Below are positions 22,254 to 56,070 of a stretch of 64,000 bases of DNA, in pieces. Origin of the DNA: Amoeboaphelidium protococcarum X5. Lineage: Eukaryota > Fungi > Aphelidiomycota. Location of the stretch: assembly GCA_023515725.1 (NCBI GenBank), contig JALDTO010000212.1:235812-299811 (forward strand), written 5' to 3'. Position 1 is the stretch's first letter. Each line of letters opens with the position of its first letter. The translations under genes and the position numbers were made by a program. A model generated the notes under the pieces. It was not told the origin of the DNA and did no database searches. It saw nothing but the letters and a program-made list of their open reading frames with translations.

Positions 22254-22656
22254 CATTGCATTAGATGCTGAAGTATTTTTTGTATAATCTTATGAAAATT
22301 CCGTTTCGTATTGATTTTATACCAATGCTATTGCCTCCATGGTTCTGAACCAACTCATTCGATTCGAGTTTTATGTTCGTTCTCCTAATTTTTCATCGCG
22401 TTGACTTTATGCTTGGCATTGCAAATAGAGCTATAGTTACAACATCTTTAAGATAATGTTGACCACTGTTAAAATCAATAAAGCACCAGGCCGGATATTA
22501 TTCCGATTTTCGGATTCTTTACGGGGCGAACAGATGGCCGATCATCACGATCGCGATTAAGGTCCTCGGCACGTTTTCCCACGGATATACTGTACTTGCA
22601 TAAAAAAATTGATAAATTATCGAGATTTGACTTGGTAACCCAAATCAGCATCCGAT

Positions 22657-23616
22657 ATGTCCATGTTTTAGTCTAGGTTAATATGTATTGCTGTTGCTGT
22701 TTTAAGTTGGGCCAACCATTCGCTGTCGTCGCCTGTAATCTAATCTTCTGCTGAGCTTGATGTCAGGAATCTAGATCGTAATTCTGTGTTTGCACCTGTC
22801 GATGAACAGGATTTAGGAGCCTTGCAAAGCATAGCTCAGGTTAATGAATGTCCTATCTGTTCTTATGACTTCTACGAGGATTAAATGCTCACTCCGTGCT
22901 GCCAGTCTGTGTGCTCATAATGCGCAACTAAGCTGGCCAAGATGAATGAACTATGCGATTTTTGTAGAAAACCGCGTAATTCGCAATCGGAATTATCTGT
23001 AATCACGCAAACTTTAGATGAGGTGCAAAATGTTCTGGATTGGTGCCGTGATATTCTGTAAAAAGATTCTGATAATTACGCTCCGGATTTGACTTGGCTC
23101 AATTTGTATCTGGCGGTGAGGTTTAAACTTACAGCTGCTTCTAAAAATTTGCAGTCTTTAGATGCTTCTAGAATCGTCAACCTTCCCGGAAGGGATCTGG
23201 GAGAAGAATTTGATTATCTACCATTCACTATCACTAACACTGGTTCTGCTCTTCACTAATCACTAAAGAAGTTTAGACAGGCTCTCCATAGGCTTAAAGT
23301 TCAAGAAAGCGTTGTGATTAGCGACACCCGTTTAGAGTAGGCTATCGACTAGATCAAATCTAGTGAGTTGCCGTTATCTCAACGACGGAGATGGTTGAAG
23401 AATTATTTCTCCTATGAAATGATAGATTAGAAAATCATCATGTCTGGGCTATTTGTGGAACTTTCGAAAGCTTTTGAAGAGTGTAAAAAGGTCCTCATTG
23501 ATAGACACAAGTTACGCTTGGACCGTCAGGCATAATTAGCACGAAGTAATGGTTACTTGAAATTTAGTCCTTTGTTTGATCCGGGCGTGTATTTTGATTA
23601 GGTTCGCGAAGACTGA
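22657..23616 (+). CDS. Signal peptide + RING-type zinc finger + unknown helical domain (paralog 1, 319 aa)
   Basis: Signal-like MSMFQSRLICIAVAVLSWANHSLS/SPV. RING-like ECPICSYDFYEDQMLTPCCQSVCSQC...CDFCRKP. Frame checked codon by codon to TGA 23614-23616. Confidence 0.8.
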
Positions 23617-24272
23617 TTTGATTTATGGGGCATTTAAGTATTTTATTACAGTATTTTATACATAACATAACACTCTCATCAGAGCAATTTTCAATTCAGA
23701 TGTTCGTCATAATACATGATGGGCAGCATGCTACTGGAGTACACTGAAAAGTAATGCTCAATCTCGATACTTAAAAAGCAAAGTTTTATCTCTGTCTTAT
23801 GACGACTAAAACAATGTACAGTTGGCGCCAGTTTTCCTGCAATGCGCAATGGGCCAGTGGCATAACTAGCTTTAGAATGAAGGTACGCAATAAATTTACT
23901 CTTAAAATAACTTTCCCACGCTCACTCTATTCTCTCCGATAAATTCTCACACTTGACAATTATATAAATGCTGCACGCTTCGCTCGCTTCATTTGCTCAT
24001 TGTCACGCGCCGATGTTTCATCTAAGTTTACCCATCTTTAGGTATTTGTAATATAAACACAATTAGTTTAAGAGATAAAGTTAGGTTGTAAAGTACCAAA
24101 CGTGATGACAGGTTGGGGATATTTAATCATTTCATCCTTACTAAATGCCGAACAGTTATGCTTTCAACACTATTATGCTAGACAGTTACCATGGAAAGGC
24201 TTAGAAGGATCCCGTAATATAAATGAAATTAACCATTTTCCAATTAAACACCGTAGATTATAACGACACTAT

Positions 24273-24446
24273 TGTTGGGGGTGATGTTCAGAACGTCTGC
24301 CCCTGAATCGAGTTTGAAAAAGTTTTTACAAGGATCAAAGACGCCACCCACACTCATTGACTTTTGATCCTTGAATGATAGACAAAAGGCACACGGCATA
24401 TACAATTAACAATTTACTGTTTCGCTTTATTTGATTTAGTTCAACA
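24273..24446. mobile_element. Putative solo LTR (174 bp)
   Basis: Begins TGTTG and ends CAACA. Flanked on both sides by CTAT (4-bp target-site duplication). Confidence 0.5.
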
Positions 24447-25333
24447 CTATACTTGATCATATGGAGTAAAGATTCGAATCCTAGGTTCTAAAAGCTTTTT
24501 GATAGATCCAAAAATTATAGAGGTTCGATTCAGACTTAAGGATTGATTTTGAGATTATATCAGAATAGTATGATCTAAGTTAATGCAATTTGATAGATGA
24601 AATGATATGGTATAGGTTAATGTCGCTGTGGCTCAGATAACTCTGGAGTGCAATGTAGTTATTCTCTAAAACTAATTATAGTATTCGAGCATAATTTGAT
24701 TCGTGAATCGTCCCATTCGACTTTGATTATACTGCTCAGTAAGATGAACAATGACCTTATGGAAATGATAGACGCAGACGCTGCTAAGGAAGCTTTTATT
24801 GAGAAGTCAGAGAGAAGATTACCTAGATAGAGAAAAATGATGAGACATGATGAAAATATATGTTTAAATTCTAAAATTTCTCTCTCATCTCGGCATTGGT
24901 ACGCACATCGAAGAGTCATCTCAAAAATTTGAGTACCGCTAGATACGCCACTGATGCAGAGTATTTTGACGCTTGACCGGTCCAGCCTGTGAGCTAAACT
25001 AGACCGGCTCGGATTTCGGTCAGCAGTCTGAGACCAAGGTTAGACCGCTCAGACCGTGCGGAGCCCTACTTCCGCGTAGGCTCGCTGATGAAGACTGACG
25101 ACTGTCGTCGTCGCTAGTTATGTATTCGCCTTGTCCAAATAAATATAAATGTGGAAGCTGTTTCGCCCAAACCCTCAATTCAGTCTGAAGTTCTAACTGA
25201 GCTCTGTCCAAAGGATGAGATGGATACTTTTGCACCGTTGGATACTTATTTCAGCAACTTAAAGCTGAACCACTTTTTCAACACAGATTTGGACAAGTTG
25301 GCGGAGAACGTGCCTTAAAATCATCGTCTTTTA

Positions 25334-25987
25334 ATGACTATCTTTGTAGAAAACTATATGCGCCCGTACATCGAACAGCATCAAGGATTATTGGCTGGTG
25401 AGCATAATACAGGCGCAACGAATGGTATTGATTGCTCTGATGGTATCTTTAATGCCCGTGGCTGTCTTGTTTCTTCTATTTACGAAGTTGACAAAATCTC
25501 TGGGCGAATCAATATTAGATAGCTGCAAAATAAGGACTTCTTAGAACAATTGACGGGTAAAAGTGGTGGATTTTCAAGATTGGATTTCTCGAAGAACGAG
25601 CTATAATCCGCCGACTTGGAGATCATTTAAAGCATTATCACTCAATTAAACTCATAGGGCAAGATCAAGCAGATCTGCCAGATTATTCTGGAGAATAATC
25701 GAATTCATGGTTTAGGCGAGTACAAGGAGATGGTTCCTCGTATACTTCGCGAATTGGCTGATCTGCCGTAAATTTCGTACATCAACATCAATAATAATCC
25801 ATTTTGCACAGTTGATCGGTTGGATTTCTGGCGGAGCTTGCTTGTTAATGACATACTGACGAGTAAAGTTGTCTGGATCAATCAGTATTTCCTGAATTCA
25901 AATGGCTGGAAAAACTTGGTCTTTGATGAACTAGTGAGCCAAAAAATGAGAAACGTCCATCGAGATTATTACGCTAATTGCAATTGA
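25334..25987 (+). CDS. Intronless LRR-like hypothetical protein (217 aa)
   Basis: Three LRR-like units RLDFSKNELQSADL, QIILENNRIHG and YININNNPF, then KVVWI...W...VHRDYY. ATG to TGA with TAR=Gln. Confidence 0.6.
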
Positions 25988-26946
25988 TTTTGAGTCGTTA
26001 ATGGAATATATACGTGATTTTGAAACTTTGTTTGACTTTGTATCTGAAAGCTTCCCCTTTGTTGAATAAATTCAATATTATAACATCCCAAAGGCCCCGA
26101 CGACTCGGCAAGACACGTTACATCATATGAATTTTCGGTCAGATTGCGCAGTAGTTCTGTCCATCAATTGTTCATTATAACCGGCTCTGATCAATGTGAC
26201 TTTAGTGCAATCCAATATCAGCATAATCACTTTCATCAGCGCAAAACCACAACGCCTCTCTTTAGAGGTTCCTTCACTATTAAAGCACAATTTCATCAGA
26301 CTTTAACACACTAAGGAATACTATTTACAGTTGAGTATTCGTAGCAATTAATATCCCATAAGATAGTTGATTCTCGGACACCACAAGAACATTTTTAGTT
26401 GGTCGGTCGGCGTGTTCTTAGTTTCAAGCCCATAGTCTCGATTAGGCCTCCCAATAAAATATTGGTTACTTCAATCGAATATTTCGCTATTGACACCATT
26501 AATATTACTTTAGTGCGAGTGTTATGCTGTATCATGATTTAATAACTCTTTAAAATTGATTATTATTTTAGGCGATTAACATTAATAATGAGAAGTTGAT
26601 TTGTGGTTGGATTTTAATAAATGTTGAATCGATGTTTTTCATACTTTCAAAGTTTCTTTCTCAATTTACTAATTATAGCAGTAGTTTTCATACATATAGA
26701 TATTACGCTTTAGCATTAAAAAGGTGTCTTTCGCAGTAAACTACTTTCTGGAAATATATATTGCTCACCTGTTGCATTAAATATTCATGAGGCTTGAAAT
26801 CTTAGATCGCACCCAATCAATGTGCAGTGCTCCTGTAAACGTTAACTTGCCGTGTTTTTCACTACTTTTACATCTGTGACATTGTGGCGTTGCGTCCCTT
26901 TTTTACCTCCACTCCATCGTAATTTGATTTTGATAATTGATTTAAA

Positions 26947-27975
26947 ATGAAGAGCTAATTTTTGATTGTGTGCGTGTATACTCTGGTACTTTTTTGCCAT
27001 TTATTGAATGCTGGCTCATTCACAGAAGGTATTAATGATGTCACTCAGTAAATCGCGAATGGTGATTCCATTGAACAACTTCTGGCTGAGTCTAAGTCTG
27101 AAGCGCTTCTTAATGACGACGCTGCTTCAGAGTCTAATTTGCAGGCTTTGGAATGCCCAATCTGCATGGAGATTTATGGACAAGATTAAACGCGTGCGAT
27201 GGAATGTTGTCGGCAGCAGGTATGCGCTGATTGTGTAGATCTGATCAAAAGCGACTAGATGGAGACATGCGCGTTTTGTAGGCACCCTCTCTTTGGCAAT
27301 AGCGAGTAGAGCGTGGTGATCAATGGTCTTCAGCAGATTAGTTTAAATTTAAAGTGGGTCGAAAATGTCTTGAAGCGATCACCAGCTATAAAGAGTATAG
27401 ATATGACGTGGCTGCGGTTGTATCGATAGTCTCATGAATTTCTAAAAGAAAGTGCACTATAGATCGATAAAATGGCCATGTCTTAGATTGTGAATTTACC
27501 CTAGCGTAATTTGGGTGAGGAGTTTAATGATCGTCCCTTTGATTCCAGTCAGTCTGGCATGAAGCTCAAGGAGGATGTGGGAAAATTTTATTAGGCTGTG
27601 CTCAAGATCGAAGGCTCGCTGCATCTTTGCATAGGATCCCGCATACTTTTAGATTAACTTATTGATCTTGTCGCGGAAACGAATGATTATAAAAGACAAC
27701 GGCGCTTAATAAAGAACAATGATGCTATGGTTCGGCTCATAAATAAGTCGTTAAATTCTCTTTTTTATGATGTGGCGCTCACGCTCAAGAAATTTGAGTA
27801 AGTACTTTGGGCTAGGAAGGCAGTCAGGAATGATCCTTTGCTACATTTTCACCGAATAGACTACTCCAGGTTTGAGCCTTTATTTGATCCTGCAGACTAT
27901 TGGCCGAATTCGAAGCTAGCATTGCGTCACTCAATTGCAACTGGTGATAATACCGAATAGGAAGTTAAACCGTGA
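26947..27975 (+). CDS. Signal peptide + RING-type zinc finger + unknown helical domain (paralog 2, 342 aa)
   Basis: Signal-like MKSQFLIVCVYTLVLFCHLLNA/GSF. RING-like ECPICMEIYGQDQTRAMECCRQQVCADC...CAFCRHP. Shares D(L/M)TWLxLY, IVNLPxRxLGEEF and FxPLFDPxxY with 22657..23616. Confidence 0.82.
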
Positions 27976-54115: not shown

Positions 54116-55875
54116 TCATGTGAATCGATATCTTAGACCAAGACTTTCGCAGTGTCTTTTAAATACATTAACAGGCAGGGATTTGGTGAATATATCAGCA
54201 ACCTATTCTGCGGTTGGACAATATTGTTAGACTATTTTACGACTTTCAACTTGATCCCTAATATAGTGATAGCGAGTCTCAATATGCTTAGTCTTATGGT
54301 AACTTTGTGGATTATTAGTGATGGCTATGGTAGATTTATTATCCTAATTGATTACTAGAGGTTCCCAGTTATTGGCCTCATCATCAAGACTTTTGATCAT
54401 CTATGCGTTCAAGCATAAGTCCAGTCCACATTCGCTGAATCCTAGATTGAGTTCCTAGAGAACATGCCTGCAATGCATGAGTTCGGATGCAGTATAATCA
54501 GCAGCATAGTACTCAGCTTCAGGTGTGCTTTTTGCTGTAACTGGTTGTAGTTTACTCTTCCAGCTGATAGCGGCACTACACATTATTATTGTACTACCTG
54601 TAATGGATCTTCTCTTTACAGTGTCTGCTGCATAGTTAGCGTCAGCATATCCTTTTGGTATGACAGATTTATTACCATCTATTGTTATGCAATACTCCTG
54701 AGTTCCCTTGAGATATCGCAGTACCCTCTTTGCTAATTACAGTAGTTCATTTGATGGATCTTGCAATTGACTGGAGAGTTTTCCAACAGCATATGCTAAG
54801 TCCGGGCGTGTGGCTACCATCAGATACATCAGCGCTCCTACGATAAATCTGTATTAGGCTTTATCAACACCAGAGTTTTTAGATTGATCCAACTTGTCAT
54901 TGGCTGGGGTTGATACAGGATTACACTTGTCCATCAAGAACTTTTGGAGTAGTTTTTTAACGTACTGTGACTAGCTTAGTGAGATTGACTTGGAAACTCG
55001 GTTTCTCTCTATTTTTATGCCCAGTAGATGCTTAATTTCACCAAGATCGTGAATATCAAAAGTTGCAGCCAAGTTTGATTTGAATAGATCCTTCTGCACC
55101 TTGTCCTTGGTAACTAATACAATATCATCTACATAGACTAGAATGATGAATAGATCTTCGTTAGTTCCTTTATAGTACAAGCATGGATCTTTTTTGCTTC
55201 TGTTGAAGGATTGCGACTTAAGGAATTGATCTAACTTAATATTCCATCGTCGTGGAGCCTACTTTAGGCCATAAAGCTTAACCTTACTGTCTTGCCTTCA
55301 AACTCAGTTCCTTCTGGTCCCTACATGTATATCTCTTCTTCAAGATCACCATTCAGGAATGCAGTAGAGACGTCTACTTGATAAATATCAAGATCAAACT
55401 TCGCTGCCAGAGCTAGCATCATTCTAATAATAGTGAGACGAACAACTGGCGAGAAGGTCTCATTGTAATCTGATCCAGGAATTTGTCTAAACCCTTTAAT
55501 AACTAATCTGGCTTTATATCTGTCAATGGTACCGTCGGCTTTACGCTTTATCTTAAATACCCATTTGCATGGTAGAGCTTTCTTACCAGGTGGCACCTTG
55601 CATTCATACCAAGTGTTATTCTTGATCAAACTGGAGTTTTCACTCAAGATGCTTTCAATCCATTTTGGAGCTGATTTGCAGGTAATGGCGTCTTTGTAGG
55701 ACTGAGGAGCATACGTATCATCAGATGCATCGCTCACCGTAGTCAGTAGAGTATGGATATCATCAACATGGAGAAAGTAATTCGTAAAATCGTCATCTGA
55801 GCTTGCTTATTCTTACTGTCGAGCTTCATCCTGGTATTCTGACTGGCCACTAGTATTATCCTCATCATCATCATT
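54116..55875 (-). mobile_element. 5'-truncated Ty1/copia pol (RT + RNase H), frameshifted near 55285
   Basis: KWVFKIKRKADGTIDRYKARLV, DVSTAFLNG, LYGLK[TAG]APRRW, LVYVDDIV, TRPDLAYAV, GYADANYA, AKSTPEAEY, KHIETRYHYIRD and ADIFTKSL. No gag or integrase. Confidence 0.92.
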
Positions 55876-55884
55876 CGGCGGGTG

Positions 55885-56070
55885 TGTTGGAATTTGAGTT
55901 TTGTTATTCTAAGCAATCTGATTAGTCGTGTAACAATGTAGTTAGAGAAGCCTCTTATGATAGGCTGATCACTGATAGTGACACAGATCTTGATTATCAA
56001 ACTTCTCTTTCTCATTGAGATTAAAAACCAAGCTTAACAGCAATACATTCTTTACCAAGAAAATCCAACA
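55885..56070 (+). repeat. Related copia-type LTR (186 bp) in the opposite orientation, preceded by its polypurine tract
   Basis: GGCGGGTG then TGTTGGA...TCCAACA (7-bp inverted ends). The 5' part resembles the 53919..54104 LTR. Confidence 0.7.

Follow-up and report, generated by a model that had tools for sequence, protein, structure and literature searches.

A pair of paralogous genes of the aphelid Amoeboaphelidium protococcarum predicted to encode RING-finger proteins with a signal-peptide-like N-terminus

In the aphelid Amoeboaphelidium protococcarum X5 (assembly GCA_023515725.1, 23.6 Mb), two paralogous genes, here named p1 and p2, lie on the plus strand of a 64,000-nucleotide stretch of contig JALDTO010000212.1 (positions 235,812 to 299,811; C211:235812-299811), referred to below as the window. 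Each gene is predicted to encode a protein with a signal-peptide-like N-terminus, an acidic spacer, a RING finger built from cysteines only and a helical C-terminal domain, an architecture from which a first-pass annotation of the bare sequence had proposed secreted ubiquitin ligases directed at the algal host.

Open reading frames (ORFs) of the window reach 2007 amino acids (aa) when TAA and TAG are read as glutamine (genetic code 6), which the window as a whole requires. Under the standard or the bacterial code the p1/p2 region breaks up into fragments with ORFs of 40-80 aa, and neither gene appears in its true frame, as had been remarked at first reading; under code 6, p1 and p2 read through 11 and 13 in-frame TAA/TAG codons, respectively, to a single terminal TGA each. 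Both ORFs lie exactly where they had first been placed, and comprise the following parts (window positions):

22657..23616, plus strand: p1 gene, 319 codons and TGA (code 6); product identical to database protein P0005
22657..22728, plus strand: p1 signal-peptide-like N-terminus (aa 1-24), called by a hydropathy and charge heuristic only
22849..22965, plus strand: p1 predicted C4C4 RING finger (aa 65-103), with Ile67 in CPIC and Arg104-x-Pro106 after the last Cys
22978..23613, plus strand: p1 orphan helical C-terminal domain (aa 108-319), with motifs at 23086-23109, 23173-23211 and 23563-23592
26947..27975, plus strand: p2 gene, 342 codons and TGA (code 6); product 94.7% identical to P0006 and 83.6% to the homeolog P0007
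26947..27012, plus strand: p2 signal-peptide-like N-terminus (aa 1-22), called by the same heuristic only
27154..27279, plus strand: p2 predicted C4C4 RING finger (aa 70-111), followed by Arg112-x-Pro114
27289..27972, plus strand: p2 predicted helical-bundle C-terminal domain (aa 115-342), with motifs at 27400-27423, 27487-27525 and 27871-27900

The two products align collinearly, with 32.5% identity across 268 aa (blastp E 1.8e-36), a similarity which by that measure is far beyond chance. Both genes appear intronless, in keeping with the NCBI gene models of two strains (319, 339 and 342 aa). Seven intact copies are found over the two strains and two homeologous regions; p1 and p2 are real genes. 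Genome and Pfam searches were run with stop-free pieces of the genes or with the database proteins P0001 and P0004-P0007, among which P0005 stands for p1 of the window, and P0006 and P0007 for p2.

The N-terminus of p1 carries Arg7, a hydrophobic core of 12 residues and small residues at -3/-1 for cleavage after aa 19 or 24; that of p2 carries Lys2 and a core of 16 residues, and could be cleaved after aa 22 or 24. Over 10 aa, hydropathy peaks at 3.0 in p1 and 2.9 in p2, and the roughly 40 residues that follow the core are acidic (net charge -5 and -8, respectively), which agrees with the signal-peptide-like start and acidic spacer of the original description. Past residue 35 we found no second hydrophobic segment (best 19-aa Kyte-Doolittle mean 0.85 in p1 and 1.34 in p2); thus the absence of a downstream transmembrane segment also held, and a membrane-spanning segment that would place the RING in the cytosol, of the PA-TM-RING or N-terminal anchor type, was not detected by this heuristic. 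As a control for the hydropathy measure we sampled 20 other RING genes out of about 50 in the genome. A value of 2.5 was reached by two of them (L033 and L039), one PA-TM-RING-like and the other Hrd1-like, both with later membrane segments; as only RING genes with membrane segments score comparably, the heuristic appears to separate these classes sensibly. By the positive-inside rule, positive charge before the core and negative charge after it would put the C-terminal part outside the cytosol. A short core with this charge distribution fits a cleavable signal peptide, which we consider probable, and is the opposite of what is expected of an anchor with a cytosolic C-terminus.

That the hydrophobic segment is truly N-terminal follows from the orthologous copies, in which an in-frame TGA lies 9-36 nt 5' of the ATG with no other ATG between them. 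A start of p1 at the upstream methionine at 22456 was discarded on the same grounds, since the longer upstream frame of the window p1 is not conserved: the orthologs carry an in-frame TGA there.

The cysteine-rich module reads CxxC-x12-CC-x3-CxxC-x10-CxxC in p1 and CxxC-x13-CC-x4-CxxC-x11-CxxC in p2, followed in both by R-x-P; the His-less pattern had been described correctly save for the p2 spacer, which is x13 and not x14. Compared with the RING consensus C-x2-C-x(9-39)-C-x(1-3)-H-x(2-3)-C-x2-C-x(4-48)-C-x2-C, all eight ligand positions (the predicted zinc ligands) are Cys, and seven of the spacings agree. At ligand 4 a Cys takes the place of His and directly adjoins ligand 3 (x0 against x1-3), with x3 (p1) or x4 (p2) separating it from ligand 5. 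C4C4 variants of the RING are known. A profile built from this module in the five available members was searched against all PDB sequences, and all 60 of the matches listed are RING E3 domains, including TRIM32 (E 1.5e-8), the EHV-1 RING (1e-5), the C4C4 RING of CNOT4 (4e-4), ZNRF3, RING1B and TRIM21; RNF4 was matched at 2e-9 for the tandem two-RING construct and at about 5e-4 for each domain alone. Within this genome the profile also recovers bona fide RINGs, at the places where Pfam puts them. Single sequences score E 2e-4 to 6e-4 against Pfam zf-RING_2 (21-22 bits, in all five members) and about 1e-3 against zf-C3HC4_3. By profile search, which we regard as decisive, the module is a RING. 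The matches to TRIM32 and RAD18 extend into helices on both sides of the finger, which may indicate the arrangement of dimeric RINGs.

Among the matches listed, the RINGs of TRIM32, RNF4 and RING1B (PDB 2CT2, 5FEY, 4AP4, 2H0D) are the closest, sharing with p1 and p2 the cross-brace spacing and CPIC and, in RNF4, the Arg after the last Cys. These proteins are cytosolic or nuclear and their fingers are of the C3HC4 type, whereas p1 and p2 have a Cys adjoining the third Cys in place of His, and a signal-like N-terminus. All eight ligands are Cys in CNOT4 (PDB 1UR6, 1E4U) and RBBP6 as well, yet CNOT4 has C-x-C where p1 and p2 have CC, p1 continues as CC-x3-C, and the CC-x4-C of p2 is what we take to be the RBBP6 pattern. 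The RBBP6-type relationship suggested at first reading comes down to this CC spacing and was not borne out: RBBP6 is absent from the 60 PDB matches listed, Pfam searches found neither DWNN nor zinc knuckle in the family proteins, and the CNOT4/RBBP6 architecture (DWNN, zinc knuckle, RRM) is not shared.

Two features outside the ligands bear on function. No member departs from the Ile in CPIC or from the Arg-x-Pro that follows the eighth Cys, and this Arg aligns with the one that follows the last Cys of RNF4. In RING-E2 structures an Ile between ligands 1 and 2 contacts the E2, and a basic 'linchpin' after ligand 8 activates the ubiquitin-charged E2 (E2~Ub); on the strength of that established structural work, the Arg of p1 and p2 is presumably such a linchpin. 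The invariance of both residues at about one third overall identity is the best argument at hand for ligase function as opposed to a disulfide knot, and the putative RING of p1 and p2 probably works as an E3.

The C-terminal domain was modelled on its own from the homeolog P0007 (residues 113-330, five sequences), and gave a bundle of long antiparallel helices with a mean predicted local distance difference test (pLDDT) of 79.9 and a predicted template modelling score of 0.79, so that the helical domain of about 210 aa anticipated by the first-pass annotation is confidently modelled. The three shared motifs that had been noted, D[LM]TWLxLY, IVNLPxRxLGEEF and FxPLFDPxxY, are present in p1 and p2 and invariant in the five database members; they fall at the start of helix 2, in the loop after it, where the model is least confident, and in the tail, respectively. 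Conservation is thus strongest at the helix 2 start, the loop and the tail rather than in the helices, as might be expected of a binding surface. No relative of the domain emerged: Foldseek against PDB returned nothing at E <= 1e-3, shape matches in the Atlas had template modelling scores of at most 0.54, an ESM Atlas feature search gave no usable match, and in Pfam neither the domain nor any of ten stop-free pieces gave a meaningful hit. The best VIA-align scores (Z 11.4), to designed bundles, the alpha-catenin/vinculin tail and the p130Cas and FAT bundles, are below the informative level for helical bundles, which suggests a generic bundle and not a family. P0007 carries a precomputed Pfam match, PF27641.1, in the protein collection. 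Outside the RING, the five-member alignment contains no conserved Cys, which fits a protein working in a reducing compartment.

A genome search with the stop-free pieces returned p1, p2 and one copy on contig C205. This contig carries a homeologous copy of the neighbourhood (91% identity over 19 kb) with an intact p2' (P0007, 84% aa identity to p2) and a p1 remnant made up of the promoter and the first ~36 codons only; p1 has been deleted from the C205 homeolog in this strain, together with what lies downstream of it:

22764..26706: segment absent from the C205 homeolog, containing most of p1, a 494-bp insertion and the gene between p1 and p2 (the middle gene)

In the other strain (GCA_023515745.1) both homeologous cassettes are complete, in the order p1, middle gene, a minus-strand gene, p2. 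The 'family' of the first-pass annotation is therefore real as to its paralogs and overstated as to its size: genome doubling has turned two old paralogs into a set that numbers seven intact genes over the two strains. A. protococcarum has almost twice as many genes as A. occidentale (13,180 against 7,568; PMC10608142), which fits this picture of homeologous copies. RING and E2 gene matches in the genome are likewise almost all paired, with near-identical scores on different contigs, consistent with a doubled genome.

Beyond the three copies in this genome and those of the other strain, no relative was found outside the species. A 65-aa query against 1.84 billion representative proteins retrieved only P0001 and two repeat-protein artefacts, sequence and profile searches of 5.8 billion proteins retrieved A. 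protococcarum proteins only, and metagenome and viral contigs contained no relative. The larger collection seems to include the A. occidentale proteome, as suggested by NCBI names together with the A. occidentale NCBI protein in PMC10608142. In the collections searched, p1 and p2 are, as far as sequence similarity reaches, restricted to A. protococcarum. Their glutamine codon use (about half TAA/TAG) and GC content equal those of the neighbouring genes, which marks them as native genes; a recent horizontal or viral origin was ruled out by this native composition and by the lack of any viral relative among those contigs.

The ratio of nonsynonymous to synonymous substitution rates (dN/dS; Nei-Gojobori under code 6, p1 and p2 copies compared pairwise) ranges from 0.30 to 0.61 over all pairs, against 0.05-0.16 in three flanking genes (Ipi1, a dual-specificity phosphatase and a 121-aa membrane protein); the middle gene has 0.19-0.32. 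Selection thus maintains p1 and p2, yet they evolve several-fold (3-5x) faster than these neighbours. The p2 RING (0.16-0.34) is the slowest of the three domains in all pairs but one, and the p1 RING (0.24-0.45) overlaps the values of the helical domain. The two genes are hence lineage-restricted, fast-evolving and variable in copy number, as would be expected of secreted RING effectors of the PbE3-2/NemLGF2 kind.

Taken together, these features lead us to favour, tentatively and at somewhat less than even chances for the chain as a whole, a reading of p1 and p2 as soluble RING E3 ligases of the secretory pathway that act on algal proteins. A cleavable N-terminal signal peptide would direct each protein into the endoplasmic reticulum (ER) and out of the parasitoid's cytosol; behind an acidic linker, a helix-flanked C4C4 RING, nearest to the dimeric TRIM32/RNF4 type, would recruit and activate host E2~Ub through the CPIC Ile and the Arg; and the orphan four- or five-helix bundle would bind the substrate, with the IVNLPxRxLGEEF loop and the FxPLFDPxxY tail as its most conserved parts. 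As targets one would expect proteins of the algal cytoplasm, which the trophont enters and engulfs. We infer each of these steps (signal cleavage, secretion, arrival in the host cytosol, E3 activity and substrate binding) from the genes. The original proposal is supported in part: the reality of the genes, the RING homology, the E2-contact residues, the signal-like N-terminus, the species restriction, the fast evolution and the recurrence of the layout in this genome are in its favour.

Several observations weigh against this reading. To our knowledge, no route into the living host cytosol has been described for aphelids, and a zinc finger with eight free cysteines would have to cross the oxidising ER. 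The signal-peptide call is based on a hydropathy and charge heuristic, and the core of p2, with 16 residues, is of borderline length for an anchor in the membrane. The zf-RING_2 scores of 21-22 bits lie below the 27.3-bit cut-off, the p1, p2 and p2' loci are not among the matches listed in genome-wide scans with PF13923, PF14634 and PF13445, and a full-length AF2 model (pLDDT 41) was useless for the RING and was discarded. Throughout, dN/dS is below 1, with no gene-level sign of positive selection. Finally, aphelid trophonts take up host cytoplasm by phagocytosis (PMC6299283), which makes delivery to the host cytosol less direct than in microsporidia. A dual RNA-seq paper on Graesiella and A. 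protococcarum (PMC8657485) makes no mention of the p1 and p2 genes.

Secreted RING ligases of intracellular eukaryotic parasites have precedents. PbE3-2 and PbRING1 of Plasmodiophora brassicae are secreted, active RING E3 effectors (10.1101/2022.10.26.513834), and like p1 and p2 they combine a signal or signal-like N-terminus and a RING, without a transmembrane segment, in an intracellular parasite of a photosynthetic host. Ubiquitination of host proteins has been proposed for both and demonstrated for PbE3-2, and secretion and activity have been established by experiment, whereas p1 and p2 are known from their genes; moreover, PbE3-2 has a C3H2C3 RING near its C-terminus, p1 and p2 an N-proximal C4C4 RING followed by an orphan bundle, and there is no sequence relationship. 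In the microsporidium Nematocida displodere, a relative of fungi, families that pair signal peptides with RINGs are a hallmark; its NemLGF2 proteins, with predicted signal peptides and RING domains, have been hypothesised to target the ubiquitin system of the host (PMC4928854). This family, too, is lineage-specific and fast-evolving with the same combination of features, but it makes up >10% of the genes and carries a C-terminal RING in 113 members, against two paralogs plus homeologs with an N-proximal RING here, and microsporidia live directly in host cytoplasm while aphelids phagocytose it. Given these precedents, the idea follows a known pattern and is not a new principle.

The layout recurs elsewhere in the genome. 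Four genes at C192:446400-461600 (loci L023 and L024) combine a signal-like N-terminus with a C-terminal RING and have no membrane segment; they form two families, two C3HC4 genes on the plus strand and two RING-H2-like genes on the minus strand, have a disordered or uncharacterised middle part and show no sequence relation to p1 and p2. Signal-plus-RING genes are thus recurrent in the species and not a one-off. It is possible, though we regard it as doubtful, that A. protococcarum evolved several unrelated families of soluble RING ligases with signal peptides (p1/p2 and at least two on C192) that are released onto the algal cytoplasm, or into it, and redirect host E2. Were this so, no class of effectors would have been described for aphelids before them, and secreted RING effectors would have originated independently a third time, beside those of plasmodiophorids and microsporidia, here with a new helical-bundle substrate receptor. 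Aphelids form the sister lineage of fungi, A. protococcarum crashes mass algal cultures, and the molecular means by which these parasitoids subdue algal cells are essentially undescribed. In a lineage with no known effectors, a set of candidate secreted ligases offers a concrete and cheaply testable entry point; if confirmed, they would show that intracellular eukaryotic parasites without close kinship have repeatedly evolved secreted RINGs to hijack host ubiquitination.

The alternative that survives best, which we nonetheless consider rather unlikely, is a membrane-anchored endogenous ligase: an uncleaved signal anchor would leave the RING and the bundle in the parasite's own cytosol, regulating membrane or vesicle proteins at its ER, Golgi or endosomal membranes in the manner of plant ATL and animal RNF24/RNF122. 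An N-terminal anchor with a cytosolic RING is a common layout, and signal-peptide predictors often call such ligases secreted. A cytosolic location would spare the zinc finger from folding in the ER, the core of p2 has a 19-aa hydropathy mean of 2.07, and one of the C192 genes carries its basic residue after the hydrophobic core, not before it. The 12-residue core of p1, on the other side, is too short to span a bilayer, and in both proteins the positive charge precedes the core and the strongly negative stretch follows it, the reverse of an anchor with a cytosolic C-terminus. ATL, RNF24/RNF122 and PA-TM-RING ligases, which share with p1 and p2 a hydrophobic N-terminal segment and a RING after it, have either an anchor of ~20 residues with basic residues behind it or, as in L033 and L039 of this genome, another membrane segment ahead of the RING; in p1 and p2 the core is short, the flank downstream of it is acidic, and a second segment is lacking. 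Species restriction, loss of a copy and fast evolution would also be unusual for housekeeping membrane ligases. If p1 and p2 were nevertheless anchored, their main value would be as a warning that a hydrophobic N-terminus on a RING protein is all too readily taken for a secretion signal.

Less probable still, and in our judgement clearly unlikely, is that the proteins are secreted or vacuolar without being ligases, residing in the food vacuole or the cyst wall or at the cell surface; the eight cysteines would then form disulfides or bind metal in a module for structure or adhesion, and the resemblance to a RING would be ancestral baggage. The signal-like N-terminus argues for secretory routing, extracellular and lysosome-like spaces lack E1, E2 and ATP, the single-sequence Pfam scores are below threshold, and in place of the His ligand there is a Cys, shifted by one position. 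A mere structural module would, however, hardly account for the invariance of the CPIC Ile and of the Arg and Pro after the last Cys in paralogs only 32% identical, for cross-brace spacing kept at eight ligand positions, for the constraint on the RING (dN/dS 0.16-0.45, with that of p2 lowest as described above) or for a helical domain without conserved cysteines.

A parasite E3 of the ordinary kind, cytosolic or nuclear, whose N-terminus has no targeting role or whose true N-terminus lies on an upstream exon, would agree with the cytosolic or nuclear location of the closest solved RINGs and is very improbable, given the upstream in-frame stops and the conserved ATG in all copies, the agreement of the NCBI models of two strains on the start, the retention of a hydrophobic N-terminus between paralogs in a stretch that cannot be aligned, and the rarity of such N-termini among the other RING genes sampled (2/20).

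As for the interval between the paralogs, the middle gene (25088-25987; 271-299 aa, without Pfam match) starts with MWKLFS in the other strain; in the window the corresponding ATG at 25149 is out of frame owing to a 1-nt difference about 15 nt downstream, so that the window gene would appear either to use the upstream ATG at 25088 or to be frameshifted at its start. The other strain has a minus-strand gene of 227-321 aa between the middle gene and p2 (L009:12930-13895), to which nothing in 26054-26706 of the window can be aligned. The 494-bp stretch at 24239-24732 is found in neither cassette of the other strain, and neither the window nor the C205 region holds it a second time; it is possibly the solo long terminal repeat noted at first reading.

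Among the E2 genes of the genome, a Ubc4/5-type gene has an intron and an in-frame TAG, and a RAD6-type E2 is also present. On C205 an insertion of ~3.3 kb (C205:569441-573025) lies just downstream of p2', and part of it is 95% identical to window positions 55884-56070, about 460 bp from copia-type reverse-transcriptase ORFs (54116-55422); these similarities suggest transposon activity around the locus in both homeologs.

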